Part shown: in pieces, positions 14,301 to 41,300 of the stretch
Position numbering within the stretch: position 1 is the stretch's first letter
Layout: each line of letters opens with the position of its first letter
Assembly: GCF_002113885.1 (NCBI RefSeq)
Contig: NW_018404123.1
Location: 307,716-371,715, forward strand
Direction: 5' to 3'
DNA length: 64,000 nt
Source of the DNA: Mizuhopecten yessoensis
Lineage: Eukaryota
Translations under genes and position numbers: made by a program
The notes under the pieces: generated by a model
What the model was told of the DNA's origin: nothing
Seen by the model: only the letters and a program-made list of their open reading frames with translations
Database searches by the model: none

Positions 14301-17300
14301 GTTGTAGCACTGTTATAACAGTCAACTTTCACTGGTGTAGTGTTTGCATGTCTAGTTACATAAGTAAAGTGTGAGTATGTTTCTTTCAAAAATGTTTAAG
14401 TGATGTAAACGGTATGTAACATCACCAAAATCATCGTAACCTTCCTTTTTTCTTAGATACCATAACATTATCAGTGACATAAAGGGGTTCCTCCAACTCT
14501 CACTGGTGTAGCGCTATAATAACAGTCAACTTTCACTGTTGTAGCACTATAATAACAGTTAACTTTCACTGGCGTAGCGCTATAATAACAGTCAACTTAC
14601 ACTACATAAAGTGGTTCCTCCAACTCTCCCTGGTGTAGCGCTATAATAACAGTCATCTTTCACTGGCGTAGCGCTATAATAACAGTCAACTTACACTACA
14701 TAAAGTGGTTCCTCCAACTCTCACTGGTGTAGCACTATAATAACAGTCAACTCTCACTGTTGTAGCACGTAGCGCTATAATAACAGTCAACTTTCACTGT
14801 TGTAGCACTATAATAACAGTCAACTTTCACTGGCGTAGCGCTATAATAACAGTCAACTCTCACTGTTGTAGCACTATTATAACAGTCAACTTTCACTGGT
14901 GTAGCACTATAATAACAGTCAACTCTCACTGGAATAGCGCTATGATAGCAGTCAACTCTCACTGGTGTAGCGCTATAATAACAGTCAACTCTCACTGATG
15001 TAGCACTATAATACTCACTGGTGTAGCGCTATAATAACAGTCAACTCTCACTGTTGTAGCACTATAATAACAGTCAACTCTCACTGTTCCAGCACTATAA
15101 TAACAGTCAACTTTCACTGGGGTAGCACTATAATAACAGTCAACTCTCACTGTTCCAGCACTATAATAACAGTCAACTTTCACTGGAGTAGCACTATAAT
15201 AACAGTCAACTTTCACTGGCGTAGCGCTATAATAACAGTCAACTTTCACTGGGGTAGCACTATAATAACAGTCAACTTTCACTGGCGTAGCGCTATAATA
15301 ACAGTCAACTCTCACTGATGTAGCACTATAATACTCACTGGTGGAGCGCTATAATAACAGTCAACTCTCACTGATGTAGCACTATAATACTCACTGGTGG
15401 AGCGCTATAATAACAGTCAACTCTCACTGATGTAGCACTATACTACTCACTGGTGTAGCGCTATAATAACAGTCAACTTTTACTGGTGTAGCGCTATAAT
15501 AACAGTCAACTCTCACTGATGTAGCACTATAATACTCACTGGCGTAGCGCTATAATAACAGTCAACTCTCACTGATGTAGCACTATAATACTCACTCGTG
15601 TAGCGCTATAATAACAGTCAACTCTCACTGATGTAGCACTATAATACTCACTGGTGGAGCGCTATAATAACAGTCAACTCTCACTGTTGTAGCACGTAGC
15701 GCTATAATAACAGTCAACTCTCACTGTTGTAGCACGTAGCGCTATAATAACAGTCAACTCTCACTGGCTGATGTAGCACTATAATACTCACTGGTGGAGC
15801 GCTATAATAACAGTCAACTCTCACTGTTGTAGCACGTAGCGCTATAATAACAGTCAACTGTCACTGATGTAGCACTATAATACTCACTGGTGGAGCGCTA
15901 TAATAACAGTCAACTCTCACTGGTGTAGCACTATAATAACAGACAACTTTCACTGTTGTAGCACTATCATAACAGTCAACTCTCACTGTTGTAGCACGTA
16001 GCGCTATAATAACAGTCAACTGTCACTGGTGTAGCGCTATAATAACAGTCAACTGTCACTGGTGTAGCGCTATAATAACAGTCAACTGTCACTGGTGTAG
16101 CGCTATAATAACAGTCAACTGTCACTGATGTAGCACTATAATACTCACTGGTGGAGCGCTATAATAACAGTCAACTCTCACTGATGTAGCACTATAATAC
16201 TCACTCGTGTAGCGCTATAATAACAGTCAACTCTCACTGATGTAGCACGATAATCCTCACTGGTGTAGCGCTATAATAACAGTCAACTTTCTCTGGTGTA
16301 GCACTATAATAACAGTCATCTCTCACTGGAATAGCGCTATGATAGCAGTCAACTATCACTGGTGTAGCGCTATAATAACAGTCAACTTTTACTGGTGTAG
16401 CGCTATAATAACAGTCAACTTTCACTGTTGTGGCACTATAATAACAGTCAACTCTCACTGTTGTAGCACGTAGCGCTATAATAACAGTCAACTGTCACTG
16501 ATGTAGCACTATAATACTCACTGGTGGAGCGCTATAATAACAGTCAACTCTCACTGATGTAGCACTATACTACTCACTGGTGTAGCGCTATAATAACAGT
16601 CAACTTTTACTGGTGTAGCGCTATAATAACAGTCAACTTTTACTGGTGTAGCGCTATAATAACAGTCAACTTTTACTGGTGTAGCGCTATAATAACAGTC
16701 AACTTTCACTGTTGTAGCACTATGATAACAGTCAACTCTCACTGTTGTAGCGCTATAATAACAGACAACTTTCACTGTTGTAGCACTATCATAACAGTCA
16801 ACTCTCACTGTTGTAGCACGTAGCGCTATAATAACAGTCAACTGTCACTGGTGTAGCGCTATAATAACAGTCAACTTTCTCTGGTGTAGCACTATAATAA
16901 CAGTCATCTCTCACTGGAATAGCGCTATGATAGCAGTCAACTATCACTGGTGTAGCGCTATAATAACAGTCAACTCTCACTGTTGTAGCACGTAGCGCTA
17001 TAATAACAGTCAACTTTCACTGTTGTGGCACTATAATAACAGTCAACTCTCACTGTTGTAGCACTATAATAACAGTCCACTTGGTGTTAATTTTGTTAAT
17101 TATCCTGAACCACTCCTAATATTATACTGTATCCCCTTCCAGGTCGGACGAGTTCATGTTGAAATCACCATGCTTGGGGAGGTTGGAACGTGTCCGTATC
17201 GGACATGACAACTCTGGATTTGGTCCCGGCTGGTTCTTGGACAAGGTAGGCATTGCTGTGCTGAACATCTCAGGACCACGGATGTCTGACCAAGACTCCT

Positions 17301-20300
17301 ACCTAGTTACACTGTTAACACTTTGTCCATGTACAGGAGTTTTAATTTGAGTTGATAAGTTGCAGTAGATTTATGCATGAGGATTTACTGAGTCCTAAAC
17401 ATTTACAATTAATTAAGGATGTCAAAAGAATTTGATAATTCACTGTCAAGAAAGGGGTATTTATTATACAGTCCAGAAATACCTACAACTTGCTTTAGGT
17501 TAATTTAGTGCAAATTGACCACGCAGTGACCTTTCAAGACAGCTGTATCACACATAGGCTTAGCTGTCCATGGCTGCTTTCTTTTATTGCGATTCAAACG
17601 GTTGAACCGATTGGACCAGAGTTGTTCGTTTTATGAAATAAGGTCGGACCTAGTAATCTGATGCTGCTTTCAGGCGAGCCTTGACAAGGCCTTGCAGGGC
17701 CTGCATAAACTTTTAACAGGTCTGCCAAGATTTTTACCCGATCATGTTACATTTAAAAACAGAAAAACCCATTGTTCCCCATAAACGAACAGGCTCCTTA
17801 TCTGTGGTACCAAAATTCAGCCCAATTTCTAATGAGATTAAGACAGTTTTTAATTTTAATATGATAACGAAAATCTGAAAACAGGTTTTTATTTTTAGAT
17901 TTTTAGATTTTGCCTCTAGCAGATAAGAACTCCATTTTAAGAGATGTCCTAATATACTTATATATTAACAACATGGATTTCAGAAAATCCTATATTCTTA
18001 AAAAAACTGTATAAAGAAAAAAAGAGAAAAGAAGTTTTATTGGCTGTTTGAAAATACAGATCTTCGAGCGAGAAATAACAGAACAAGAAAAATATACTGT
18101 GTGTTAATATATTGGCCAATCAGTGTTTGGTTGCTTCATCAGATTTCCAGCACAGACATAGCAGAGTTCAGGTACCATTTTTGAGAGAATTGTTTTTGGG
18201 ATAAAAGTCGTTCAGAACAACCAATAAAAGTGTCGGGGGGGGGGGGGGGGGGGGGGAAGTGATCATCAGATGTTATCATTTTTAACAGCTCTTTAATTGG
18301 TTGAAATCAGAATGATATCACGGTAATCGTAAGGTTTCAGTGTTGATTACTGTTACATAAAGCAGTTACGTAAGAAATGAGGTAAATCGTGTAGATAAAA
18401 TGTAGCCAGTGTTACAGTAGATAAGTCTCTGACAGTAACACTATGTACAAATTATGTCGGGGCTCATTAATAGGCTTGGCACGTTTTGTATAAAAATCAG
18501 TTTGTTTATGCTAATTGTTGGCTTAGTTCCAAATTTTTTAATATGGTAATGACATAACATACATGTTACTGTGAACACAAAGTTTATTAAAGATAATAAT
18601 CAAGTTTTTGTAGGTTCCATGTATTTCACATTTTTGAAAATATCTCTGAAAATACACTTGAAAAATATCAAAAGCTCAAGTACAAATGAAGTGGAGCTTC
18701 GTTAATCCTTCCACCACTAGCCTGGTTGTCCCACTGTCCAGATAGGGAATTGGGGACACATAACCATTCTTCCGGAGAAATGCAGCCATTACACGAATCA
18801 GTCTCTAGCTGGATTAACAATCTGAACTGTACACATTTATATCTAAACATAAACATTTGCATTGCTATTGCCACATGGTGCCAATATGTAATATACATTA
18901 TATTATATACATTCAATATCTCCTCCAAGTAAAAAAATACTTAAGTACACATTCAATAATTCCTGTAAGTTATACACTATGCAACACATTCAGTAACCAG
19001 CTTAATTTGATTTGCCATATAATGCCCCTTGTCCATTCCGTCACACTGCCCTTACAAATTTTAATACTATTTGATTTAATTTACCATACAATGCCCCTTG
19101 TCCATTCCGTCACACTGTCCTTACAAACTAAATCTCTCTTACACACAACTTGCAAACTCACTTCTTCATTGCTGATGAATAGGTCAGACTGGGTTTGATT
19201 ATAGTCAAGTAGATAAAATATAGACACCAAGGGAGACAACCATCAGTAAAAAAGGGATTGGAATATACAACAGATTACTGCATACCAGGAAATGTCCACC
19301 GAGTCATGTATTCCCCTTCACCCGTAAAGACCATATTCACCCTGTGTTAATTTTAACCTTCACATGTAACTTACCAACAGCATGTTGTGTACTGATACAG
19401 TCACAATAAAACCACTCTCTTAGGGAGGGCAAAAATGGTGAAAGTAAAACTGCAGTAAACATTTCCTAGTATAGAGCAATTGTTTAAAAGTGACCCCAGG
19501 TCTAGTACATGTAGTGGTAGTATAAAAGTGACCCCAGGTCTAGTACATGTAGTGGAAGTATAAAAGTGCCCCCAGGTCTAGTATATGTAGTGGTAGTATA
19601 AAAGTGACCCCAGGTCTAGTACATGTAGTGGAAGTTTAAAAGTGACCCCAGGTCTGGTACATGTAGTGGTAGTATCCAAGTTACCCCTGGTCTAGTACAT
19701 GTAGTGGAAGGATTACAGTGACCCCAGGTCTAGTACGTGTAGTGGTAGTATAAAAGGGACCCCAGGTCTAGTTCATGTAGTGGTAGTATAAAAGTGGCCC
19801 CAGGTCTAGTACACGTAGTGGTAGTATAAAAGTCCCCCCAGGTCTAGTACATGTAATGGTAGTATAAAAGTGACCCCCGGTCTAGTACATGTAGTGGAAT
19901 TATAAAAGTGACCCCAGGGCTAGTACATGTAGTGGAAGTTTAAAAGTGACCCCAGGTCTAATACATGTAGTGGAAGTATAAAAGTGACCCCAAGTCTAGT
20001 ACATGTAGTGGTAGAATAAAAGTGACCCCAGGTCTGGTACATGTAGTGGTAGTATCCAAGTTACCCCTGGTCTAGTACATGTAGTGGAAGGATTACAGTG
20101 ACCCCAGGTCTAGTACGTGTAGTGGTAGTATAAAAGGCACCCCAGGTCTAGTACATGTAATGGTAGTATAAAAGTGACCCCCGGTCTAGTACATGTAGTG
20201 GAAGGATTACAGTGACCCCAGGTCTAGTATACGTAGTGGTAGTATAAAAGTGACCCCCGGTCTAGTACATGTAGTGGAAGTTTAAAAGTGACCCCAGGTC

Positions 20301-23300
20301 TAGCACATGTAGTGGTAGTATAAACGTGACTCCAGGTCTAGTACATGTAGGGGTAGTATAAAAGTGACCCCGGGTCTAGTACATGTAGTGGAATTATAAA
20401 AGTGACCCCAGGGCTAGTACATGTAGTGGAAGTTTAAAAGTGACCCCAGGTCTAATACATGTAGTGGAAGTATAAAAGGGCCCCCAGGTCTAGTATATGT
20501 AGTGGTCGTATAAAAGTGACCCCAGGGCTAGTACATGTAGTGGAAGTTTAAAAGTGACCCCAGGTCTAGTATATGTAGTGGTAGTATAAAATTGACTCCA
20601 CGTCTAATACATGTAGTGGTAGTATATAAGTGACCCCAGGTCTAGTACGTGTAGTGGTAGTATAAAAGTGGCCCCAGGTCTAGTACACGTAGTGGTAGTA
20701 TAAAAGTTACCCCAGGTCTAGTACATGTCGTGGTAGTATAAAAGTGACACCAGGTCTAGTACATGTAGCGGTAGTATAAAAGTCACCCCAGGTCTAGTAC
20801 ATGTAGTGGTAGTATTGGTGATCAACATCATACAAAAGGCTCTGACATTAGTAACAAGGTGTTATAAAGACAAAGAAAATAGTTGTACATATGAATTATT
20901 ATTGTACATATCGCTATGTGTACGTCCCATGGAGTGATAAGATGTTCGTATGCTCGTCTCTGATAAAAGGCCTTAGTTTAGTGGCAAGTTCCTACAAAGT
21001 GACAATGTGTTTTCATGTAGTGTAAATCATCTTACCCTCTCATCCCTGTAGACTAAGCAGTGCCGAGTGTGTTTATCTAAGCTCCATCTGGTGGTGCACA
21101 TATAGCCACCAGGTGGAGCCTCTGTATTTTCAAGATGTTGACTGAGGAGAGGTATTCCTGCTGGGTCATTGTGACTATATTAATGAATTCAAGGTCATAT
21201 GAACAAAGCTGAACTGTACTAAAATCATTATTGATTTCAGAAAATATATATAGATACAGCAGAATGTTTATTTTTAATAAAAGACATATTTCAAACAGTA
21301 ATGTCTTCAGAAGTATATGCCTGTAGACAGATTAGTCTCCGTCACTAACCGTCCAATCTTCACTAAAGCCACTGGAGTTTTTGTTATTGTTTTATTGCCT
21401 TATACAGATATTTCCATATCAATCACATAAAAGAAATTTATAACAATAAAAATGTCAGTTTATGAAAACTCAGCAACACAACTTTAAAAAATATGATCTT
21501 GAATAATAATCTCTTATCTCTATGACATTCCTACCAGATCATATCATCTCTGTACATTATATAGACAACAAGGTAAGGGTCCATATACTGTGGACATAAT
21601 ATTAATATTGTATTACATTGTAATTTGCAATGAAGATTTAAGAAATTTGGTGATTTTTCTCATTAATATTTAACACATTTAAACAATAAATACACATTTT
21701 ATGAGTAATTGTTCATTTTCTCAAATTTCAATCCTTGTAAATAAGTTGTTGAACAGTTAAAAACACATTGTCAGTTTGGAAAATAAATGTTTGTCAAACA
21801 ATGATTTACAAATATCAATCTCTCCTTATCAGAAAACAAAGATAAAACAATCAATCGAACCATACAATCACAATATTTTTTTATATGAATATTTAAAAAT
21901 AAGTCAAATATGGAAACAGTGCAAAATATTCTATTCTAATATATTTTTACAATGACAGCCATTTACAAATATCCTCAGTGTCTCTATTCAGGCAACAGTT
22001 CTCAACCTTAACATTCCAGCAGGCCAAGTTCACGACCTCTACTCATTCTCCACTTCCTCAACACATCTAGAGTTATCTCCCCATAGTTTATTCATCTGTC
22101 TACACCAAACTGTACAGCTCATTAGATTGTTTGTGTCACAGAGTGATAGCCCCTCTGTGTAAACAATGAGTTATTTTTATGATACACAGATGTTTTACCA
22201 CAGTTTGAAGGCCTCTTTGTGTCAACAACAAGTGATTTTTATGACACACAGGTACTCTACCACAGAGTTATCTACTCCTGTTTAGAGTTTTTTTCCCTTG
22301 TATCACAGAGGCAACATATTTCTTCATCACATTGTTATCTTCTCCTGTAAGGGGAAAATTATATCCACTTTCTTTTGTAAGACAGAGTTATCTCCTCCTG
22401 TACAGGACAACTTCTATACACTTTACCTTCCAGAGTTCTCTCCTCTTGTATGGGAAAAGTTGTATTTTGTTTGCTTTCCATAAGTTATCTCCTTTTGTAT
22501 GGAAAGCATCGTCATCCTCGTTTTTTTCTTGTTGGTATGACAGACTAATTCTCCTGGATAGAGATCCTACTCTGTCACAGTGGGGTCAGATGACGTTGTG
22601 GCTCAGGGTATTTTGACCCCACACTCATACTCGCCCTGTCACAGTGGGGTCAGATGTAGTTGTAGCTCAGGGTATTTTGACCCCACACTCATACCATCTT
22701 GTTACTGGAGTCAAGATGGGGGATATATTTGCAATGCGGGGCTCCTGACCCCACTCTGCTCGCACATATGCTGTGAAAAGGAAATGTTCAGCTTTAAAAC
22801 ATGTCTTGCATTGTTTAAACATGTCTTGCATTGAAGATATTCCATCCTCGATCTCCAGGGGAACTACACTCACTTTTGCTCTCTGCACCCCTGGAATATG
22901 TCATAGCAAAATTGAAGGCTCTGTGTGCACCACCATGTTGATGAGACAAGAAGGCTAGTTTGATCCTTTGATATACATCAAAAGAATCTCACGGTCACGT
23001 AACAGTAAAAATTGACAGGCTTTGAAGTCGGGCATCTCTCCTTTGTAATCTTTAAAGGACAGGTATCAGCCTAGCGGTTGGTCAGTTATTTTTACCCCAG
23101 ACCAATCAAACAGCTATCTTAGTGACTTCAATTTTGCTATGACATATTCCAGGGGTGTAGAGAGCGAAAGTGGGTGTAACCCCTGGATATCGAGGATGGA
23201 GATATCATGGACACCAACTTAACTATGGTACATCTTGCCTTCTACGACCCCATTTTGAATTCTCCTCCCCCATCTTCTTTCTCCTCCCTCCTGCCACTGA

Positions 23301-26300
23301 ATTACATCAGTATATTAACAATTAAATGAATTATAAAGTGAGGCGTGAGAAGGACCCTGCTTATGACTCGAAGATGGACTGTTGTTGTCTACCTTGAGTT
23401 TTAAAGGATATATTAGAGTCTGTAAGAAAACAAAAACGATCTTACTCCTTATCAAATAATTGGGCTCCGTTTTCTGACCACTTGCCAACATATAGCCTTG
23501 AAGCTTTATAGAATGATATGTAAATTGTATTAATGTGAAACATAGCTAGCACCTGTTTATCGTTATAAACCTTCTACTTGTTTACTTTGTACCCCCTGTC
23601 TAAAACTAAACGTTAAATCTCGTCTTGTACATAGGACCACCTGTCGATCACTGATAGATTGAGAATTTACCAAGTTTTGTTTATTATAAAAACCTGCCTC
23701 CAAAGACATATTGGTTATTAAGATTCATTTTGGTTTTAACTGTGAGCAATTTATATGTTTCAATATATATTGATTAATGAGTCTTATGAGTTAACGCTAT
23801 GATACTCGAAAAGCGGAACGTTTTCTCGTGTGGAAGTGTTCTCTTTGCGACTCGTTAAACTGATGGTGGAGTGGAAACTTTTCGCAACGGAATTGATTCT
23901 GAAATTTATATATTCTACATAATTATCTAAATAGAAATGTTGGTAGGTGCTAATTTACTGTACTTAATTATAATTAGTAGTTTTGGTGCTAAATCACGTG
24001 TGAAAGATTAAAATCTATGTTACTGCATGGTGTCGTCTTTATCAGATAGGAACACGTGTACTGTGTGTAGGTAACGGAAACAAACGGGTTTTCTGTTGAT
24101 ATATATCTCGGAACTGATTGGTGTACAAACAACCACACAGGTTTGTCAGAACATCATACTTCTCACCGACAGCGCACCAACTTACAATTCAGGTGTTAAT
24201 CTGGGGTTAGGTAATAGAATGGGGGTTAGATGTGTGTGAATGTTTGGTTGTTTAGGAGCTAGTTGAAGGGGGGGGGGGGCAGTTTGACAAGTGTGAATTC
24301 TGACGGGTATAGTTTGGGGAGGGGGCTGAGGGTTAGACGTGTGTTTTACGCCATAGTCATGTTAGTATTAGGGACTGATATAACCAGGTCATATAATAAC
24401 CCGTAAATGTATCCTCATCTCTCGTTTGACTTACCAGGTATTTCATAACCATACTTTAATGTCACTTACACAAATACAGAATACAATGTTTTTCCAGACA
24501 GTTCTGTTCATTACAAAAATAGATTTGGAACAGCATTTTCTAGATTTAGGTTCCTGCATGTATGTAAGTAATATAAATGAGTCTAATTGATAAATAAGCT
24601 CTACATTAAACTTTACTACATTTGAACAAAACAGTTTTCATTTTGAGTCCTTTGACATAAATGATATTCAGGTGTCCTTACCTTTTTGTGAAGGGAAAAA
24701 CGAAAAATCTATTTCCACCGAACCATCTGCTTCACTTGACCCGCCCACAAACTCACAGTGGTCCTGACCATAGCCATGCTCATCTGCAATGTCTAGGAAG
24801 TCCTCATCCAGCGAATTTCCCAGTAAAATCTTGTATCTGTCTTCAGAACACAAAATCACGCCTACGAATCTTGCAATTGTCCCGCTACAGACGCTGTTCT
24901 GGCGGACATACTGGAGCTTGTTGCAGCTGTTCTTGATGCTGTTGTAGGTGAAGTTGTATTCCATCCAGTCTCCCGACTCCAGCTTCTTTTGGATGTACAA
25001 GTACTTCATTGTCTGTCCGTTTTTGGAGACTTTTTGTGCCATTGTTGCTTGCTTGACACCAATAATCTGAACACTGCGACTCAGATTTGTTATAACTGAA
25101 AACTTAGATTGGATACGAAGAAGATTTTGCTGAAGAGACCGGAACTTGGTTCCGATTTCCCGATCATTTTGTGCCATGGTGTCTTTGATGCGATCAAGTT
25201 TTACATCAAAAGCATTTTGCTTAAAGTCAAAGCCGCCAAAATCAGCCTCAAGGTCATTCAGCCGCATTTCCATGTCCGAGTTTTGGTTGCGTGACTTGTT
25301 GAGATGTTTGAGCTGAGACTGAACTGTGTCAATGCTCTGTTGCAGATTTGCTTGCATGTTCTGACTCTCGTTGCGATAACTCTGTAGTGTCTGCTTGAAT
25401 ATATTGAGGTAACTACTTGACATATTGTTGTTCCTCTCTTGAATAGTCATTCTTTGCTGCAGAGCTGTCATGGATGACTCAAGTCGCTCCTTCAGGTTTA
25501 CTTGAATGTGTGTCTTCAGAATGTCAAGCTCATTCTGTAAGTGTGATGCTCGCTGAAGCGTATTTTGAGGTCCATCAACCCGTCTGCTGAGAGATTCAAG
25601 ACCTGCCTTCAATTCAGACACCTGTTGTGTGACTAGGAGACTGTCCAACAGAGAGGATGTCCGGTCATTTCTAGAAATTGCTGTCAGATTATTTTTCAGT
25701 TCCAAAAAGTTTATTTCAAGTTCTGAAATTTTGGCGGTAAAGTTGCATTGAGAGCAAATTGTTGTTTCTGTGTCCTGAACCACAGTTGCTATGGTAACCT
25801 CCTCCTGTTGTTGTTGTATAGCTGCTTTAACAGTACGTTGTATTATGACCTTGAGTTGTTGTGATATTTCATTTGTTAGCTGGTCTTTTTCCTTGACTGA
25901 CAAATCGGACTGTGATATGTCCTGAGTTGTGTTACTTGATGAAGTGCCCCAGGACAATGAGTTGCTTGAAGATTCATTCTCTGCTGATGTATTGTCTGTT
26001 GAGACTTTCAGGATCTCTGACAGATCAATGCCAGCTGATGTGTTTCCTAGCTCTTGTTCATCCAACACCCTGGAGGAATTGGTGTCCACTGTTATATTGG
26101 ATTGACCCTCCTTCTCCAGCGCTGTTTCACCTTCTCCTAATTGGTCAATTGCCTTGTCATGGCTGCTAGTTAATTTTTGGAGTGATCTAGCAAGTTGGTT
26201 GATATTTACTGATTCCACCTCCAATAATTCATCACTTTCTTGATCTTTATTCCTAAAAATAGAGTTATCGCCCTTCAATGCTAAATCCTTCAATGAGGAA

Positions 26301-29300
26301 TTTTCTGAATTCTCGTCCATGTCCATGGCTGAGCCGGTATCCTCAAAGTTTCGGGAATACATATGGAAAAGTTCTTGTTCTAAACTCTGCATTAAATTTG
26401 CTTTTAGAATTTGAAACTCTGCCATCAGTAACGGTTTAATAGGGTCCAGTAGTCTATCAGAATCCTCTGTTGATTTTGAACTTAACCTGCTTAACGTTTC
26501 AATTTTGGACTCAAATTCATGATATTTTGATTCTAGATATCGGTTTTTTAATGTCATTGCACTCATTTGACTTTCCATGCTTTCAACCTTGTTTGCCAGA
26601 TCAGCGTATTGTGTCATTGCTGGTTGAATGCGCTGTGTGTCGATGACCCGTACATGGTGGCTCATCTGTCGTAGCTGGGCCTCTAACGATTGTAGTTTGG
26701 CCATGAGTGCCTCATGGTTGTCACAGTTGTTTTTTATACTGTCCTTGGGGATGACAAGGCTTAAGACGCACGTATCCTGTGCCGAGTTATAGTGCCGAGG
26801 AATCCCCCACACGGGGATGATCGCGGACCAGTAAAGTAGGAACGCTAACAGTACAGTGCACAAATATTCCATAGTGATGTCCCGGAATAACACAGAAGTG
26901 TGAATAATCACTCCACTTACTAAAGGTGATGATAAGAATGGTTGAAAGACAACTTAACAGAATTGTGAACACGCTGCCTGTTTTTATGTATCACCGAATT
27001 ATTTATCCTACAGAAAGTCTGTAAAAATGACAAAGTTGCCACATTTATGAATTCCACAAGTATTATGTATCGGTGCTGAGGTGATAACAAGCATGCTCTC
27101 CAGTGTAGTCCATATCATAAACTATCTGTTGTGCCACATGCTGGGCCAGAATTCATATCATTTTTACACGGAAATCCACACTTCCTCCAGTTTTTGTCTG
27201 TTGAGTAATCCCTCGGAACAGGCTAACAATATATCACAACCGTTAAATTCTTTTTTTTTGTTTGCTATCCAAGTTTTAACCAGATGTATTCGATTTGTAA
27301 ATACCTAGATATTCTCGGTGTATCCTGTAAACATCAGTTCTGAGTTACATTGGTGAGGCTGCAGTCTGATTGTAGTAGGAAGTTAGCTGGATCATTAGAT
27401 ATATTTCCATGCTATTTGAAGTGGGTGCTGTCTGTGGTGCGATCCCCTTGTAGTGAGAACTCCTAACTCCGCACCCTATCAGCTAACACTGATTGGCCTG
27501 GCAGCATACCACATATAATTCATTCACTGTTTACAAATGTATATAATGATCTTTATCGTCAGAACATGCCCACTTATTTGTAACGCGATGGATCATCTGC
27601 TCTGGCATAGCCGTTTGGACTCTGGTCAAAGAAAATTCCTACAGACTGAGAGATTCTTAGGGTTATTGTTTGTAAATAAATGACTGTTTTCGCTGTCAGT
27701 CCGGAAGTAAATAATTTTCGAACGAATAAACAAGTTCAATGTGATTGGGTGTAACCCAAACATCTTCACATGGTACTACAGGGGCCTGTGGTAGTGGGTG
27801 TAACCCAAACAGCTTCACATGGTACTACAGGGGCCTGTGGTAGTGGGTGTAACCCAAACATCTTCACATGGTACTACAGGGGCCTGTGGTAGTGGGTGTA
27901 ACCCAAACAGCTTCACATGGTACTACAGGGGCCTGTGGTAGTCCTCCGTGGGTACTCATCAATCTTACTCCCATCAAAGCTTAAGTTTTCTTACAAATCA
28001 AACATTTTATGGGGAAGGATAGTCACACCAACATTGATCATTGCCAATTACTCTCACATTGATAAGATGTTTCTGGTGTGACATCAGTAAGCACATACAT
28101 TTAACACACAAGATTGGCAAACTCCAAAGTTTGACTCCCAAAAAGCTTACCACCATATATCATTTTTATACCACAAACACATTGTTTCATAAAACTTGTA
28201 TGTATCATCTTATAATTTAGAACATGCATACCAGGTACCTTGGTATAAAATATACCTGAACATGCATACCAGGTACCTTTGTATAAAATATACCTTTATA
28301 CAGACTGAGAGTGTAATTTACTATACCTTTATACAGACTGAGAGTGTAATTTACTATACCTTTATACAGACTGAGAGTGTAATTAACTATACCTTTATAC
28401 ATAATGAGAGTGTAATTCACTATACCTTTATTACAGACTTAGAGTGTAATTTACGATACCTTTATACAGACTGAGAGTGTAATTTACTTCACAATATTAA
28501 CAATCAACAATCAAAAATCATGCTCATTCTTGCAAATGTATTTCTCTGTATCATTAGTCTAGATATAAGAACATTTAAAAGAGAACTATGATAGTGAGCA
28601 TCATCCATACTTGTTCTAAGTCTAAATGAAAGCTTGGGTTTATCATATGGGACAATAGGCTGTTTGCTATAAATAGATTTAATGCATATCGGAAAAGAAT
28701 GGATACATTATGTACACTATTTAATTATGTATTTCATCAGAAAATTAAATTATTTACGCATTTATTTAACAAAATAAATTCTGGAATTCCCATCCCTAAT
28801 TAATTATTAAAGGACGATGTTTGGTTTGATGTGAATATAAATATAGTAGATAAATGTTGTGTCTGTTTTTACATTCCATGATTAAATGGTCTCATTAGTA
28901 CCAAACATTAAACATGCCTAACTCATTAAATGTGCTCTCTAATGNCCCCCCCAGCAGGAGTTTGAGAACTCCTCATAGTGCTAAGACCTCTACAATACAG
29001 ATTGTGCCAGGCTGTACGAAATGGCTAAAAATCTTCAAATACAGGGCAAATAGTCCCAGGATGAATATCCTCTCCAGAGAGGACAAATAGTCCAAGGATG
29101 TACATAGTAGCTAAAAATCCTCCCCAGAGAGGGCAAATAGTCCCAGGATGTACATAGTAGCTAAAAATCCTCCCCAAAGAGGGCAAATAGTCACAGGATG
29201 TACATAGTGGCTAAAAATCCTCTCCAAAGAGGGCAAATAGTCCCAGGATGTACATAGTAGCTAAAAATCCTCCCTAGAGGGGGCAAATAGTCCCAGGATG

Positions 29301-32300
29301 TACATAGTAGCTAAAAGTCCTCCCTAGAGAGGGCAAATAGTCCCAGGATGTACATAGTGGCTAAAAATCCTCCCCAAAGAGGGCAAATAGTCCCAGGATG
29401 TACATAGTAGCTAAAAATCCTCCCTAGAGAGGGCAAATAGTCCCAGGATGTACAAAGTAGCTAAAATTCCTCCCCAGAGAGGACAAATAGTGCCAGGCTG
29501 TACATAGTAGCTAAAAATCCTCCCTAGAGAGGGGCAATAGTACCAGGCTATCCATAATAGCTAAATTCCTCCCTAGAAAGGGGAAATAGTGCCAGGCTAT
29601 ATATAGTGGCTAAAATTCCTCCCTTAAGAAGGCAAATAGTGCCAGGCTGTACATAGTGGCTAAAAATTCTCTCTCAAGAGGGGGAATAGTGCCAGGCTGT
29701 ACATAGTGGCTAAAATTCCTCCCTTAAGAAGGCAAATAGTGCCAGGCTGTACATAGTGGCTAAAAATTCTCTCTCAAGAGGGGGAATAGTGCCAGGCTGT
29801 ACATAGTGGCTAAAATTCCTCCCTTAAGAAGGCAAATAGTGCCAGGCTGTACATAGTGGCTAAAAATTCTCTCTCAAGAGGGGGAATAGTGCCAGGCTGT
29901 ACATAGTGGCTAAAATTCCTCCCTTAAGAAGGCAAATAGTGCCAGGCTGTACATAGTGGCTAAAAATTCTCTCTCAAGAGGGGGAATAGTGCCAGGCTGT
30001 ACATAGTGGCTAAAATTCCTCCCTAGAGAGGGGAAATAGTGCCAGGCTATACATAATAGCTAAATTCCTCCCTAGAGAGGGGAAATAGTGCCAGGCTATA
30101 CATAATAGCTAAATTCCTCCCTAGAGAGGGGAAATAGTGCCAGGCTATACATAGTGGCTAAAAATTCTCTCTCAAGAGGGGGAATAGTGCCAGGCTGTAC
30201 ATAGTGGCTAAAAATTCTCTCTCAAGAGGGGGAATAGTGCCAGGCTGTACATAGTGGCTAAAAATCCTTCCCTAGAGAGGGGAAATAGTGCCAGGCTATA
30301 CATAATAGCTAAATTCCTCCCTTAAGAAGGCAAATAGTGCCAGGCTGTACATAGTGGCTAACAATCCTCCCTAGAGAAGGGAAATAGTGCCAGGCTGTAC
30401 ATAGCTAGTGGCTTAAAATTCTCCCTAGAGAGGGGAAATAGTGCCAGGCTATACATAGTGGCTAAAATTCTTCCCTAGAGAGGGGAAATAGTGCCTGGCT
30501 GTACATAGTGGCTAAAAATCCTCCCTAGATAAGGGAGATAGTGGCAGGCTGTACATAGTGGCTAAAACCCCTCCTCACATTAGTAAGATTATGCCAGGCT
30601 ATACATGGTGACTTTGACTCCTCTGAAAGAGGGAAAATATTGCCAGTTATACATAATGTCTTAGACCCCTCCAATGCAGATTGCGCCTGGCTGTACATGG
30701 TGCAAAAGAAAATCTTTTATTTAAAGTTAAATAAAGGCTGTTTTACAATGTTATCAGTTTGAAATATAAAATGCAATTGTTTGTGTAAGAGATTCAATTT
30801 CTAGTACTGCAGTCCTATTTTTTTTATAATACTTTTGGGAGTCAAATCTGTGCTTACCAGCCTATTAGGGTTCAGTATGTCCCATTTTGCCAAACACTCT
30901 CTCAGTCTGATGAGAGTATACTGATGGGTGATATCAGTGTTAATATTGGAAGTAGGCTTCCTGATGTCAGGATATATAGCCTTGTACCACAGATAATTGG
31001 GTGGGGTGGGGTGGGGAGGAGGGTAGGGTGGGGTGGTGTTGAGTCCTTGAAGAGCAGTTTGATTTCTTCACCACATGGACAAAGCTCTTTAGTTTTCACA
31101 GGAATATGTGGGACGTTTTTGTTGTGGTAGAACAAGGAAGTCTGGTTTAGGGATAATGTATGTTAGTTATTTCAAATGTTATAGCAGGATAAGGGGAGAA
31201 GGCAGATGTGTGGTTTTCACGGGAATATGTGGGAGCTCTTTGTTTGGGTAGAACAAGGAAGTCTGGTTTAGGGATAAGATATTTTTTGTGCCAGCTATTA
31301 TCTTTGCATCTTAATTTTAACTATTAATTAAACAAAACTTTAAAAAGTAAAATTGATAAAATAAAAAAATGATATGTCCAATTCCTAAGGAAAAACGTGC
31401 GTTGAATTAAATAATTTCAACAAATTTTCAAATCATAGAGTTATAATCTTAAGAATTAAACTTGCCAAAACCAACCTGTATCAATCAAACCTTCGTCAAG
31501 GCCCTATTGTGTATAATTCTATGTATGGTATACATGTATTCAAGTAATTAGAAACAAATGTCTATAATTATCTTATGAGAGATATTGGTTGTTAGGTGTT
31601 TGGTCTAGACAGATTTTATTAGGTTATTAATTCAATCACAAATAAAGTAAACATACTTTGTACCTGAGGGTTGCATGCAAGGTTGTGTAACTAGCTCAAC
31701 ATGAACAGGATGAAGATTACCAGATTGGTTTTTAGGATTTAGAGGAGGGACCAGTATTGTTAAATCATGTTAATTGTCACTATTTTCCAGTGCCACAATG
31801 GTATTAAAGAGGCATTTGTTGATACGTTAAGAGAAATGTAAAGAAAAGAAGGAAATGTGACTTTTAAATACTTGAGCAATCTGGGTTTTACTGTATATAC
31901 CTCTCTGTAGTAACAATCTGTCAAAGGAAGAAAAAATATATGTAAGTAAGTGTATATTACATAATATCATGTAAGTGTCGGAAGATAGAGAACCGGGTTC
32001 AATATTCCTAAACGTGTTTCCTTACTCAAACCAACATTCTGTACTCCTGCTGAATCCTGATAAAACAGAGGAAATACCCTTTATATTTTACATTTAATTT
32101 GTTTCTAGGTCCTTAGTCTGGTAACTCAGTTCCATTCTGATATTAATATTTTCTAACTGACACTAGTGTCTTCAGTAATCAGTGGATTACATAAAAGATT
32201 TGACCACATGACTTGAGTTTAAAGCGTAAGAACTATTAAATAGGGTATACTGACGTGACACGTTTGGTTTATTAATACAACGTTTCACAAAATGGACGGT

Positions 32301-35300
32301 GGTGAAGTCACTAACACATAGTTAACCATACTTTCCAGGAGGAAAACATTGAATTTATTATACGTGAAATTTAATGGCTCAGTGGTTAATGTTCAAATGT
32401 AGTTTATCTGTTAGCAGAGTAAACAGAAATAGTTATTTTTTTAATCTTGACCTATCATATCTACCAACTGTGTTGTTAATTATATAAATAGGCTTAAGAC
32501 ACACCTGTATCATTTTCACCTATCTCTATTTCTCATCTTTGTCACTTTCATCATTTTCAGGTGATTATTGATGACACCGACAACAACATTGTGTATGAGT
32601 TTCCGTGTAATCGTTGGCTGGCTACGGACGAAGACGACGGTATGACATCCAGAGATCTCATTGTCAATGTCGGGCCAATGAACATCGCTCCAGGTATGCT
32701 GTCCGCCAGGCTACTTTATAACCCTCGCTCTCAGTATCAAAATAAGACCACTTCTAATGTAAAAAAGTTTTTCGCTAACAAAACCCTACAAACAAAAGTG
32801 ACAAGTTTTTGTAATCAAAATTTGATTTAAGAGATATTCGAAATTAAACCTATCATTTGTAGAAATTCATAAAATCTTTCTGTCAGAATTTAAAAGAATA
32901 ATATTATGGATATTGTCCACACATTTGCTATCCTCACTATTAGAAATGTTATCATTTTCTCAGGATTCCCATTTGTGATTACGGTAACAACGGGGGACAA
33001 ATCAAATGCTGGTACAGACGCCAGAGTTTTTGTGGTTATGAATGGACCACAGGGAAAAACAAGTGGAAAAGTTTGGTTGGAGACTGGGAAATTTGAAAAA
33101 GGAACGACCGATATCTTTAATGTCGACATGGTGGAGATGTTGAGCCCACTCAAGGAAATAGAGGTCGGCCATGACAACAGTGGGATTGGACCTGGCTGGT
33201 TCCTGGACCAAGTGATTGTCTTTTGTCCAAGTACAGGAATAGAACAGGTGTTTCCTTGTCAGAAGTGGTTTGCTACAGACAGTGGCGATGGTCAGATACA
33301 GCGAACTCTCAAAGAACAAAAGGCAGTCCGAAAGACCAAGGAAAAGAGTAAGTTATTAAAGAGCAGTTCCAAGGCAAAACAAAAGAGTACTTTAAAAAAA
33401 GGCCATACAACCACATAATATAGGATGTTATGCAATATACAGAAGACTATGATATTCCTGGACTTATACTTCTCATTGATTTTGAAAAAGCCTTCAATTC
33501 TGTTTCTTGGAACTTTTTACAAAAAAAACTAAAATATTTCAAATTTGGCCCAACTATACTTAATTGGATAAAACTGTTTCAACAAAATATTCACTCAGCA
33601 GTAAACATAGGGGGAAACTTATCACTTTTTTTCAGCATAGAACATGGCTGTCGTCAAGGAGATCCTGTATCTTCTTATATTTTTATTTTATGTGCAGAAA
33701 TTTTATCGATAATTTGAAGAAATAACAATAACATCAAGGGGATATTTGTACGGGATAATGAAATTATTTTATCACAAATTGCAGATGATACATCTGTTAT
33801 TTTAGATGGTTCTAAAAGATCTCTGGATGAAACCTTTAAACATCTCTCTTATTATGCAAAAATATCAGGATTAAAAATGAATTTCTCCAAGACTCAGGTA
33901 GTGTGGATTGGCAGCAAAAAATATAGTGGAAACTCTTACACAACAGATTGTAATTTACAATGGGGAAGCAATTTGCTCGGGATAGACTATGATGTAGACT
34001 TACAAAGAATTACAAAACTGAATTTTGATAAAAAACTTATAAAACTAAAATCTCTTATAGCATCATGGAATAGACGAGTACTTACATCAATAGGTAAAAT
34101 ATCAGTTATTAAAACACTACTTATATCACAGTTTAGCCATTTATTTATAGCACTACCAAATCCTGAACAAACACATATAAGAAAAATTAATAGTATTCTG
34201 TAGGAATTTTTGTGGAATGGTAAACCAGATAAAATAAAGAGAGATGTGATAATTAAAAGTTATGAAGAAGGTGGTCTGAAAATGATACATTAAAAATCTT
34301 TTATAACAGCTCTTAAAGCAACATGGATAAGATAATTATATAAAGAAGAAGGAAATTGAGCTCTTATCTTAGAAACTTATTTTGAAACATTAGCTAACTG
34401 TGGGCTTGAAAAATTAAAAGAAGAATTAAAATGTTGTAGTAACCTCTTTTGGAAAGATGTCTTAGAAGCATGGTACAATACTATTATTTCTAGCAACATA
34501 TACAATACCAATATACGTGAAAACCCTCTGTGGTTCAATAGTGAAATAAAAAACGACAGAAAATTTACATTAAAAAATTCATGGTTTAAAAAGGGAGTAC
34601 AATTTGTATATAACATTATTAAAGGATGGATCACTCTACCATTTTGAAGACTTTTTTGACATACCAAGGCCTAAAGAATGCTGTTCATCATTTTATAAGA
34701 AAAATTCATCACATTTTTACTTCAGAAAAAGCAATTAATACTTAGAAATAGTAAAGGAGCACAAGACATTTATTCAATATTAATTAAAAATAATGTTAAA
34801 CCTACTGCTCAAAGAAAATGGATCTTAAATGATAATATAGATGAAGAAACATGGAAAAAAATATATGAATGTCCTTTTAAAACCACCACCAACTCCAAAC
34901 TACAGTGGCTACAGTACAGAATAAACCACAGAATCCTCACTACAAACACATTTTTATTCAAAATTGGCAAATCACGCAATAACCTTTGCACTTTCTGTAA
35001 AATCCACCCTGAAACAATAGTTCATGTGCTATGGGATTGCGAAAAAGTTGATAGGCTAATTGACGAGCTTAAAACAAATATCATAACTAAAAACCTTACA
35101 CTAAGATTTGATAAACAAGAATTCATTTTTGGTAAACATACATATAAACATACAAAGTTTTATATAGAAAACATCATAATACTACTTATAAAACAATACA
35201 TATATAAAACTAAATGCCTAGAAATAGACCTTAATCTGACTAGTCTCAAAAACCATATGAAATTTGAATTAAAAGCACAAAAGAGCCTTGTGTCTAAACA

Positions 35301-38300
35301 GAATAAATTAATAAATAAGGATGAGTTAAACCATCAAATAGATAACTGGATGCAGTTATAATATGACTATATATATATATATGACATATTTGTTCTATAC
35401 ATATATACATCTATTGTACTTTATCGTCTCCTCACTGTAATAATAATCATCAAATTCTTCATACATTTTAATTCGCCAGGCTTAAGTTAAAATAAAATTA
35501 CCTAGGATTGCTCCCCCATCCCCTGTAATGTTTTGTTTTTGTTTTTGTTGTTGTTTCTGTTTCAGTTTATTTGGTTTTACTCTTGTGTGTTTGATGTCAT
35601 AGGTTTATATATATTGTTTTTGCATCGGTGTCTCAGTGTATGTCTTTATGTATGTACATGGCATTGGCAATTTTTTAATATCTGCTTATGATATCGGATG
35701 AAAATGATGAGATAATGATGGCTGATGATGATGATGGTGATGATGATGTCATATGATGTCATATGATGTCATATGATGTCAGATGAGAATATTAAGAAGA
35801 CTATCTTATATGATGAGGATGAGGATGAGAAAGATGATGATGGGGATGATGATNNNNNNNNNNNNNNNNNNNNNNNNNNNNNNNNNNNNNNNNNNNNNNN
35901 NNNNNNNNNNNNNNNNNNNNNNNNNNNNNNNNNNNNNNNNNNNNNNNNNNNNNNNNNNNNNNNNNNNNNNNNNNNNNNNNNNNNNNNTTGATGTCATATG
36001 ATGTCAGATGATTATGATGATAATGTTAGGAATAATATCTTATATGATGATGATGATGTCTGATGATGATGAGGATGATGATGTTAAGAATTATGCTTGT
36101 AATTGTGATGATTATGACAGATGATGATGATGATGATGATGTCTGATAATGACAATGATGATGATGTCTGATGATGTTAAGAATAATGTCAGGATGATGG
36201 TGGTTGTGATGATGATGACAGATGATGATGATGTTAAGAATAATGTCAGGATGATAGTGGTAGTGATGATGATAACAGATGATGATGATGTTGATGAATT
36301 ATGATGAGGGGGAGTGTAAAAAAAAACGTTTCCAAAACTATTTAAAACTTTATAGACACCTTGGTTTAATATGTATGAATAATCATGTACTTAGGAACAA
36401 TGTCATATATGTTTTGTCTTGTCTTGTAAAAAAAAAATATATATATATATATATACATAACCAAGGAAAAGAGTATGTTCTAAAAAAGCATTTTGTAGAC
36501 TAAATTTGATTTTAAAAGTGTGTCACCTAATAAAAGCAGGTTAAGAGCTGTTAAAAAGAATAATTGTTAGAAAGGAATGAAAATATTATTTTGTTTTGTT
36601 TGTTATTTTACATGGTGATATGTTAATCGTCAAAATATCCTCCTTTTTCTGCAGAGATCCCATGGCTTGTTGTCATATCTACTAGTGATATAAAAAGTGC
36701 GGGTACAGATGCAAATGTCTACATGGTTGCCTACGGCGACAAAGGAAAATCTGACAAGGTTACATTGGACAACAAAGGGGACAATTTTGAGAAAGGGCAG
36801 ACGGATCACTTCAAGGTGGGCATGGTGGACATCGGCAAGTTGTATAAGATACGTGTATGGCACGACAACGACGGATTAGCATCGGGCTGGCACCTCCACA
36901 AGGTCAACCTGGAGAATATGACAACAAAGGAAAAGTACAACTTCAAGTGTGACCGCTGGCTGGCTGACGACGAGGACGACAAATCGCTCATACGTGAAAT
37001 GCCAGCGGAGAGTAAAGATATCAATAAACCTTTACCTTGTAAGTTTTTTGTACATTAACACCGATCTGAAAAATATAAGAGGAGGAATCTTGGATCACTT
37101 TTCATTTTTTAATTCAATGATTAGTCCATAATTATTTTCATGCTTTCTTTTCTGAACTTGCCTCCCTTGGTCTCTGAATGCATCACCATTTTACAAGGTA
37201 AAGCCAATTAAAGACTTAATTTTGTTAAAAGACTGTACTTGAAACTTGGTTGAGTTTACCACTGTCAATTACCCTCATTTATCTCTTATATTGTATGTGT
37301 TTTTACAGTGGTGAAATACGTAGTGGAAGTTCATACAGGAAAGAAAATGAGAGGTGGAACGGACGCCAATGTGTTCGTCAACCTGTTTGGTGAACTGGGT
37401 GATACCGGCGATCGTCCTCTTAAGGAATCCAAAACCAACAGAAATAAATTTGAGAAGGGAAATGTAAGCGTTTTCTCTACACTGTGTTTCTTATTTGTTG
37501 TAGTTCTAGAAAGTTCTTACATTTACTCAACCCTACATGTCAATAGTTCAGGCGATTCTACGTCCAGGAGAAATGTCAAGGTCAATGTGTAGCAAAGGCA
37601 CTGTTGTCTAAAAGACATAAGTACCATAGCAGTATAAAGCAATTTGGATACAATTCTGTAGGTCAACTCACAATCATTGGCTACTTGTTATAGCAAAGCA
37701 AATAAAGAATTGTGATACAAAATCATTACAGTTGTCAACTAAAATATTTACGTTTTCAGACGGACATTTTTACACTAGAAGCAGTGACCTTACTCAAGTT
37801 GAACAAGATCATCATAGGGCATGATGGGAAGGGTGCAGGCTCTGGCTGGTTTCTGGACAAGGTGGTGGTCAAACAGGAGGGCAAAGACAAATACGATTGT
37901 ACATTTGAATGTGGACGGTAAGTATAAATGATGCAATTCAAATAATTGAATAAAATTACTCCTAAAAAATATTGAAATTTCTGAGAAGATCTGCATAACT
38001 ATAGATTCAAAAGATTGTCCAAAGACAAGAGGTGAAAATGATTTTTATTCTGAGAAGATGAGCAAAAAAAGCACTTGTTAGCACTTACATAGTAGGTAGA
38101 GTGATCTCCCTTGTTATGTACCCTAAGTAGGTGTCACTACAGGAAGTTTTTTTATAGATATTAAATGTATATGGATATGCTCATGATACGTCACTATGAT
38201 GTACATTTGTATTTATAAAATAACATCCTTTTTAATTAGTTACTGCCTAGATATGTTGGGGTGTTTTAAGAGTAAAAATTAATAAAATGGTTTCATTTTA

Positions 38301-41300
38301 TGAAAGTTGTTGTTGTAAAAGATTGAATTGAGAGTAGAAGAACTGAAGACTGTTTTATTTATACCTGGTGTATTATGTTTATTTATACCTGGTGTGTTAT
38401 GTTTATTTATACCTGATGTGTTACAGCTGGCTGGCCACCAGTGAGGATGACGGTCAGATTGTCCGTGAGCTAACACTTGGCTCACAAATGTTGTCCAGTA
38501 AGTATTACGTGACTGGTCCTGTAAGATATTTTTGTTTTTGTCACATAGGCACATGTGGTGATTTTAGACATCTTTCCAGATGTTATTTATTTTATTGTTA
38601 TATCAAATATAACTATAAAGCGTGTGGACAAACACAATAGTATTTTATAAAAAATCATCCGAAGTTCATTCCAGGCGAAAAATGTAATATTTTTTGCCGA
38701 ACTAAATGTTCACACTCTGACCTTTGTAAAATTGTTGATTGGGCAGAACAGAAATAAAGTTGTGGATGAAAGTTTCCATTTAGTATTAATGCCAGATCTG
38801 AAATGTGTACAGACAAATCCCCAGTTAGGCCCCACAGTAGATTACTATGTATAATCTGGAGATCAGTTTATACAAGACATCAGCTAGGACCAATGGGAGT
38901 CATTCAGCTTTAACTTATCTTCTAAATTGAAATAATGGAAATGTTGATAATAATTATATAATAATGATAGGCTTTATTCATTTTTTGATAACATATTGAG
39001 CATGAAGCTTGTCTTACATACGGTAAAGATACAATGTAAGATAAAATGTACGGTATTTACAGCTTTATTTCATTGACCCAGAGAGGTGTTCGTCTGCCAC
39101 CAAAATTACAAAAAATACAACAAATCTGATGTTTTAAACCTCTCCACCTTTCAGCTACCACATACAATGTTCATGTAACAACCGGTGACATCAGAAGTGC
39201 GGGAACAGATGCCAATGTATCAATCCAGATATTTGGGTCCAAAGGAGACACAGGAGAGCTCCAACTTCGGTCCTCAGAAAATACATCCAACAAATTTGAG
39301 AGAGGAAAAACAGACATGTTCAAACTGGAATCTGTCAACATAGGGGTGGTAAGTAGGATCAGAATCATAAAAACATCTACTGAATTTTGTTAAATTATTA
39401 ATATTTCAAGTATTGTTTTCTCTTAAACATTTCCATATTAATATTTGATACCATAGTAATTGGTTTTAGAAACCATTGAAGATTTTTGGTGCCTTTCAGA
39501 ATATATTTTCAATTAATAGCTATCACTGTTATGCACGAAATAAATGCTTTACAATAATTTGAGATTAAAAATTTAATTTGTTTGTTTTTTAAGCTAATTT
39601 GGTCCTTTTCTCCAATCAAATGGTTCCGACGTAAGATGGAAATTTCTCACTAAAACAATTTTTACGACTATACTTCATGACATTCCTGTCAATAGGACAC
39701 ACAAGACAACTTTTATACTTGCATCCTGGTAAGAAAATCTGTAATAACTTCAAAGTCCTTTCTCAGGATCATGCTCTGTGACGCGTTTGTTCATGGTAAT
39801 CCCTCCTTACAACATGTGTGCGATCCCATAATACCCAAGTAGAGGAAGGGAGGTAACTCACTGTACACTATACTTCAAGGTTGTGCTACACTATCTTTAA
39901 CCTTTTACTACAAAATCCATGATAATTTTTAATTTGTTTTATGTTTTTAGCTGAAGAAGATAAAAATAGGACATGACAACTCTAAACCTGGTGCTGGTTG
40001 GCACCTCGACGAGGTCCGTATAGATGTTCCGTCACGAGGTGAACACTATCTGTTTGCTTGTCATCGCTGGTTAGCTAAGGACGAGAAGGATGGCCTCACG
40101 ATGGTGGAGCTAGAACCCTCACACAAGGAAGATCGTGAAAAACGTAGGCCAATAATTTGTCCTTTTCAATTTTTGCACAAAAATTGCATATGTATATTTT
40201 CTGATGTGTATTTGTCGGTTATTATTTGGTTGATCATTTTGATTATCATGTGCCTTTTTTACTTTTAAATAATGTCTGCATTGATTTTTGTGTGAAGGTC
40301 TTGTGTAAGATGTGTCAGTATTTACTAACATAAAATATTTATTTCCTAAAGATTTCTTAAGTCTAACAATTAAAGAGAAACACTGTTTTGTCCTCTGTCA
40401 CACTAACATTCTATTTATTTCCACATAACTGTCGCCGGGGAGGTGACCAGTTTTCCTGGTATTGTCACCAATACTTCGGGGATTACATCATTCTTGTTGA
40501 CATATTAGCATAATGTTGGCTTAATAATTATACTATATTAACATTTCCCTTTTTATACGCCCGTCGAAGACGATACGTATTATGTTATCACGTGAGCGGG
40601 CGGGCGGGCGNNNNNNNNNNNNNNNNNNNNNNNNNNNNNNNNNNNNNNNNNNNNNNNNNNNNNNNNNNNNNNNNNNNNNNNNNNNNNNNNNNNNNNNNNN
40701 NNNNNNNNNNNNNNNNNNNNNNNNNNNNNNNNNNNNNNNNNNNNNNNNNNNNNNNNNNNNNNNNNNNNNNNNNNNNNNNNNNNNNNNNNNNNNNNNNNNN
40801 NNNNNNNNNNNNNNNNNNNNNNNNNNNNNNNNNNNNNNNNNNNNNNNNNNNNNNNNNNNNNNNNNNNNNNNNNNNNNNNNNNNNNNNNNNNNNNNNNNNN
40901 NNNNNNNNNNNNNNNNNNNNNNNNNNNNNNNNNNNNNNNNNNNNNNNNNNNNNNNNNNNNNNNNNNNNNNNNNNNNNNNNNNNNNNNNNNNNNNNNCCCT
41001 TGGTTTCATTAATGCGATGCATGCGTTCCATGATGTTGTATTGCACTCATTGATCTACCAGTTATGTTGAATGATTTCTCTTTTAATATCAATTACTCAC
41101 AAATACTTCATATATTTCAATCATACAAACAACTGCTCATTCAATGTGTGACGGGCGTATTATATACCGCTCGCGGTAACCTTGTTTTTAATTAACCTTG
41201 CTACAAATGTCACCTTCAGAAAATGAAGAATTGAATTTTCATTGAACTATAATCAGAATTGAAATTAAAGCTAACTTTTCTGAGTATGTTGTAGCAAGAT

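Follow-up and report, generated by a model that had tools for sequence, protein, structure and literature searches.

The gene that we describe here lies on the minus strand of a 64,000-nucleotide (nt) window of Mizuhopecten yessoensis (Yesso scallop) DNA, nested within an intron of a LOXHD1-like host gene carried by the opposite strand. We consider it likely to be an ancient mollusc gene for a secreted, N-glycosylated stalk-and-head oligomer, clustered by an N-terminal cysteine segment, whose TARSH_C heads would bind a matrix or cell-surface partner in a multivalent manner. In the model we propose, the signal peptide would be removed and the coiled coils would then zip two or three chains together in parallel. 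The Cys35/Cys50 segment would link these stalks into a larger disulphide cluster, much as happens in olfactomedin-1 or angiopoietin-1, so that the heads would be displayed together and would bind their partner avidly. The parts of this model differ in strength: secretion is almost certain, the assembly into a coiled-coil oligomer is very probable, and the clustering by disulphides is moderately probable.

The gene consists of two coding exons. The first (24682..26872, minus strand, 2191 nt) opens with an ATG at 26872 in a strong context, encodes residues 1-730 plus one nucleotide and ends in a GT donor. The second (22667..22770, minus strand, 104 nt) is preceded by a pyrimidine-rich AG acceptor at 22770 and encodes residues 731-764, with the last third of the TARSH_C head, up to the stop codon at 22667. 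The GT-AG intron between them (22771..24681, minus strand) is a phase-1 intron of 1911 nt. Joining the exons with a local script yielded 764 residues plus the stop. When the head region of exon 1 was used as a query, RefSeq XP_021377291.1 ("paramyosin-like", Mizuhopecten yessoensis) was retrieved, and this protein is identical to the joined product at every residue, which confirms the two-exon structure put forward by the first-pass annotation. The latter was equally right that the open reading frame (ORF) track splits the gene and gives it a false C-terminus: without splicing, the exon-1 frame terminates four residues beyond the donor, and exon 2 falls in a separate 73-residue ORF. The anticipated 24682 to 22770 junction was found in contigs of four runs, one from each of four studies and presumed to be RNA, in which exactly 1911 nt are skipped, both exons are covered and the coverage of the intron is almost nil. 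These contigs, which show CT..AC on the plus strand, are strandless, yet the GT-AG orientation fixes the transcript on the minus strand; they reach about 27500 upstream and past 22000 downstream. Furthermore, purifying selection acts throughout the coding sequence (ratio of nonsynonymous to synonymous substitution rates, dN/dS, of 0.16 against Pecten and 0.12 against Argopecten), the Cys segment and the first coil being among the most constrained regions (0.06-0.08). The spliced contigs, the conserved intron and this selection rule out an artefactual ORF or a joint existing in DNA only. The runs of N in the window (28945, 35854-35987 and 40611-40996) all lie outside the nested gene.

The protein begins with a probable signal peptide (26804..26872, about residues 1-23; this and the following features are on the minus strand), within the single hydrophobic segment of the whole chain (residues 1-26), and hydrophobic N-termini are found in the homologues too. 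It is followed by the Cys segment (26723..26770), Cys35-x6-Pro42-x7-Cys50, invariant in the mollusc family, by a first coiled coil (26444..26722, about residues 51-143), by an acidic, S/T/N-rich and species-variable spacer (25883..26347, residues 176-330), by a second coiled coil with interrupted heptads (24983..25753, about residues 374-630) and by the first two thirds of the head (24682..24967, residues 636-730). Heptad-like stretches at residues 43-143 and 374-604 and 15 N-glycosylation sequons, seven of them in the spacer, were called by a simple script rather than with a validated predictor; coil makes up about half of the chain. The layout read from the DNA alone thus stands for the hydrophobic N-terminus, the Cys motif, the two coils, the sequon-rich spacer and the head, but not for CSQC, which is confined to three scallops and was rejected as a family motif. 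Paramyosin, the RefSeq name, was rejected as well: it is an intracellular rod of the myosin-tail type that lacks a signal peptide, whereas the scallop protein has a hydrophobic N-terminus, a TARSH_C head and no Myosin_tail match.

The identity of the head is firmly established. Searched exon by exon, positions 1-78 of the Pfam profile PF21731 (TARSH_C) match exon 1 (E 2.5e-26) and positions 94-127 match exon 2. Against the entire head of the database protein the profile scores 132.4 bits (gathering cut-off 27; positions 1-127 of 127; E 1.9e-38), so that the proposed likeness to the C-terminal domain of ABI3BP and FNDC1 is borne out across both exons. Residues C650, C675, Y680, D697 and C706 are invariant and D704 is kept in 98% of the sequences; C662 is an extra cysteine of scallops only. 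Like the scallop protein, ABI3BP/TARSH and FNDC1 have a signal peptide and a C-terminal TARSH_C domain with four invariant cysteines and an invariant aspartate. In place of their FN3 repeats, however, the scallop protein carries a coiled-coil stalk and the N-terminal Cys segment, and the Pfam scan revealed no FN3 domain or remnant at E<=1, as the first-pass annotation had maintained.

The modelled fold of this head (predicted local distance difference test, pLDDT, 93) is rather probably SRCR-like, the SRCR fold being a curved sheet wrapped around a single helix, with the two termini close together. When 48,161 chains were searched with the modelled core, all 20 structural matches were SRCR domains (Z 3.3-5.6), and the core superposes on whole SRCR domains over 84-92 of 100 residues, with a root mean square deviation of 3.2-4.6 and an identity of 3-12%. 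Two points weigh against this assignment: the Z scores are low and lack sequence support, and none of 96 TARSH_C sequences matches Pfam SRCR or SRCR_2 at E<=10. A PDB sequence search with head profiles gave no match at E<=10, and hence no solved relative of TARSH_C by sequence, while viral and ESM-Atlas fold searches with the head returned nothing above noise. A fibrinogen-like or C-type-lectin fold, for which there was no structural match, was rejected. Compared with an SRCR domain, the scallop head would have an additional 35-residue N-terminal hairpin and two predicted disulphides. The class A scavenger receptors SCARA1, MARCO and SCARA5 likewise bear a terminal head on an oligomeric stalk, but the scallop protein is predicted to be secreted and has neither a membrane anchor nor collagen. 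Binding through a cation bridged by Asp697 is possible, if rather doubtful.

At the other end of the chain, the Cys segment and the first coil are probably, on moderate support, distant relatives of the oligomerising region of olfactomedin-1. Residues 26-125 score 26.2 bits against Pfam Noelin-1, just above the cut-off of 25; noelin is the best PDB sequence match of the family profile of the N-terminal region, with both cysteines aligned (E 7e-5), and also comes first in a language-model search (0.82), which is a lead only. The score above the cut-off suggests that the angiopoietin/olfactomedin-like layout put forward initially is more than an analogy. The motif itself is C-x14-C here versus CXCX9C in noelin. 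Two controls weaken the match, and the relation is therefore graded as probable and distant: a profile of the Cys segment alone retrieves no noelin, and a wider N-terminal profile scores noelin at E 0.18 only. With hhalign, the mollusc Cys-segment profile does not match the amphioxus CXCX9C protein but matches a hemichordate protein with a probability of 88%. A word-based search with the limpet N-terminus returned the limpet sequence alone. The amphioxus protein P0076 combines an exact CXCX9C, a coil and TARSH_C (Noelin-1, 28.4 bits), and hemichordate and amphioxus relatives share a C-x-[YH]-[ST]-x3-P..C segment, which we take to resemble that of angiopoietin. In olfactomedin-1, the CXCX9C-bearing N-terminal region is required for the disulphide-linked, V-shaped tetramer, and oligomerisation depends on its cysteines (PMC4463452), and Ang1 follows the same three-part logic of clustering segment, coil and binding head (PMC4609988). 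Olfactomedin-1/noelin, OLFM2-4 and myocilin thus share with the scallop protein a signal peptide, an N-terminal Cys segment, a coil and a C-terminal globular head, but the scallop protein gives no OLF match, its TARSH_C head replacing the OLF propeller, and its stalk is much longer, with a predicted glycosylated spacer. Angiopoietins, ANGPTL and fibrinogen-related proteins also join a short clustering segment, a coil and a terminal ligand head, which in the scallop is not fibrinogen-like by Pfam or by structure.

The head profile retrieved 432 proteins among 1.84 billion representatives. About 25 further proteins are of the mollusc type, with a signal peptide, the invariant Cys-x6-Pro-x7-Cys, a stalk and one terminal head. 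Those with a named source belong to scallops, Mactra, Sinanodonta, Patella, Haliotis, Aplysia, Octopus and the chiton Liolophura; the architecture occurs in bivalves, gastropods, cephalopods and a chiton. In a quick, midpoint-rooted tree of 133 columns, which does not include the chiton protein, the complete mollusc heads form one clade (Shimodaira-Hasegawa approximate likelihood ratio test, SH-aLRT, 96), within which scallops, cephalopods and gastropods each make up a subclade. The FN3-type ABI3BP/FNDC1 heads, whose named members are chordate, form a separate clade (SH-aLRT 100) that sits among amphioxus and other invertebrate heads, apart from the molluscs; P0155, which looks like a human or primate ABI3BP, figured in the bulk scan only and was excluded from later analyses. 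Amphioxus and hemichordates possess shorter proteins with a Cys segment, a coil and TARSH_C, but their scattered placement in the tree does not support a single origin of the layout. TARSH_C is a mobile extracellular module, joined elsewhere to domains of the PAN, Ig, CUB, MAM, LDLa, Sushi, EGF, WAP and trypsin types.

Other occurrences of the domain deserve mention. Bacterial-type surface proteins with DUF4215, FG-GAP or BNR repeats (P0012, P0025, P0046, P0066, P0149 and others), assigned to taxa by sequence features, often contain it in tandem and form one side of the tree. Modular serine proteases (P0091, P0119, P0084, P0102) combine it with CUB, MAM, LDLa, Sushi or Ig, which recalls SRCR in enteropeptidase-type proteases. 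In Crassostrea virginica, PAN- or Sushi-TARSH_C-TARSH_C genes with adjacent gene numbers (P0026, P0027, P0178-P0182) suggest a tandem expansion and would fit an immune lectin-like role better. Many database homologues (P0006, P0008, P0009, P0015, P0018 and others) stop shortly past the helix motif of the head; they are probably unspliced read-through of the conserved head intron, and genuine intron retention in cephalopod transcripts may also be a source.

The antisense nesting of the gene is shared with other molluscs. The host exons, on the plus strand, encode PLAT domains; ten of them were located by homology ahead of the nested gene, which agrees with its placement in LOXHD1 intron 10, and the gene is flanked by host exons with PLAT-repeat homology at 17135..17250 and 32561..32696 (both plus strand). 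In Pecten and in Argopecten the orthologue occupies this host intron too, likewise antisense, and the flanking exons indicate the same for the chiton; in limpet and abalone it lies inside an annotated PLAT gene, and in Mactra it adjoins the orthologue of the following host exon. For Octopus, Aplysia and Sinanodonta nesting could not be demonstrated, no host gene being called and no PLAT exon occurring within 10 kb; the limpet and abalone genes, though nested, have no PLAT exon within 10 kb either. The phase-1 intron of the head is kept in all nine other molluscs examined, 33-34 codons ahead of the stop, and two amphioxus TARSH_C genes have an intron at the same head motif. Minisatellites with units of 38, 49 and 50 nt (19485-20815, 27746-27942, 29067-30574) flank the gene within the host intron.

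The occurrence of TARSH_C alongside CUB, MAM, LDLa, Sushi, PAN, Ig and trypsin modules, as for extracellular binding modules, was counted in favour of a binding head. A special case of such a multivalent ligand is a soluble pattern-recognition protein of innate immunity, akin to collectins, FReD or C1qDC proteins, whose clustered heads would bind microbial polyanions or glycans in haemolymph or mucus; we regard it as unlikely. In bivalves, expansion and diversification are usual among immune lectins, whereas the matches comprise about one family gene per species, under strong purifying selection and at one genomic position since the chiton split. The stalk-and-head layout shared with those proteins, the apparently expanded oyster genes and the cation-dependent binding of microbes by SRCR domains (PMC7043408) speak for it. 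Two further explanations fit worse than a multivalent ligand. A mainly structural fibrous protein of mucus, basement membrane, shell or byssus matrix, in which the coils would polymerise into filaments or networks and the head would serve only to nucleate the assembly of chains, as the C-terminal domain of collagen does, would suit the amount of coil, the predicted glycosylated spacer and the cysteines available for cross-linking; it is nonetheless improbable, since TARSH_C is stalkless in many proteins, in tandem in others and present in bacteria, hence not a dedicated assembly domain, and contig depth, a poor guide, is modest. The other reading, an ABI3BP/FNDC1 orthologue in derived form whose FN3 domains have been lost, has the shared TARSH_C domain in its favour, but is extremely improbable in view of the separate clades (96 and 100, in a short, midpoint-rooted tree) and of the absence of any FN3 remnant in Pfam.

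Several features accompany the transcript. Contigs cover an unspliced 5' region (26873..27498, minus strand) conserved with Pecten and Argopecten; the upstream conservation is long (26873-27762 and 28667-28762), with eleven upstream ATGs at 27044-27410, and this region is possibly a long regulatory 5' untranslated region (UTR). The 3' UTR (20790..22666, minus strand), its distal end deduced from the length of one contig, contains a non-coding block (20932-21258) with 74-77% identity among three scallops, the first 65 nt of which are a tandem repeat in Pecten; AATAAA/ATTAAA sites stand near it at 21396, 21278 and 21272. At 22572-22694, a 64-nt tandem duplication that is not present in Pecten or Argopecten repeats the last codons and the stop within the 3' UTR of the gene itself. 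In the intron, 22790-23200 is a highly repeated and abundantly transcribed element with many loose-ended contigs, probably a repeat resembling a short interspersed element (SINE) or a miniature inverted-repeat transposable element (MITE).

In conclusion, databases already hold the RefSeq gene model and, on relatives, the automatic UniProt label "TARSH/FNDC1 C-terminal domain", but the pan-mollusc stalked TARSH_C family is apparently undescribed: the open-access literature yielded nothing on it, on the noelin-like segment, on the SRCR-like fold or on the ancient nesting, and no paper on such an architecture, in keeping with the first-pass view that this is not a described family. Nor did that literature yield a paper on the function of TARSH_C, though the domain ends two vertebrate matrix proteins. 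We tentatively advance, at somewhat less than an even chance, a broader proposal: TARSH_C would be an offshoot of the SRCR fold, deeply diverged and not recognised before, that animals and bacteria share and that has a cation-bridged binding site at its invariant aspartate. The mollusc protein, whose gene would have stayed within one LOXHD1 intron ever since molluscs arose, would then represent an ancient class of invertebrate multivalent ligands that resemble noelin and angiopoietin and carry a TARSH_C head. The misleading database names paramyosin-like, CLIP1-like and cytospin-A-like are corrected. Chitons, gastropods and bivalves split in the Cambrian; the nested pair common to them is a very old arrangement, usable as a synteny marker. 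The mollusc family would pair a noelin/angiopoietin-type clustering stalk with a third kind of head, and this natural display on a stalk, together with a candidate SRCR-like fold and its one invariant aspartate, makes the function of TARSH_C testable by a point mutant.
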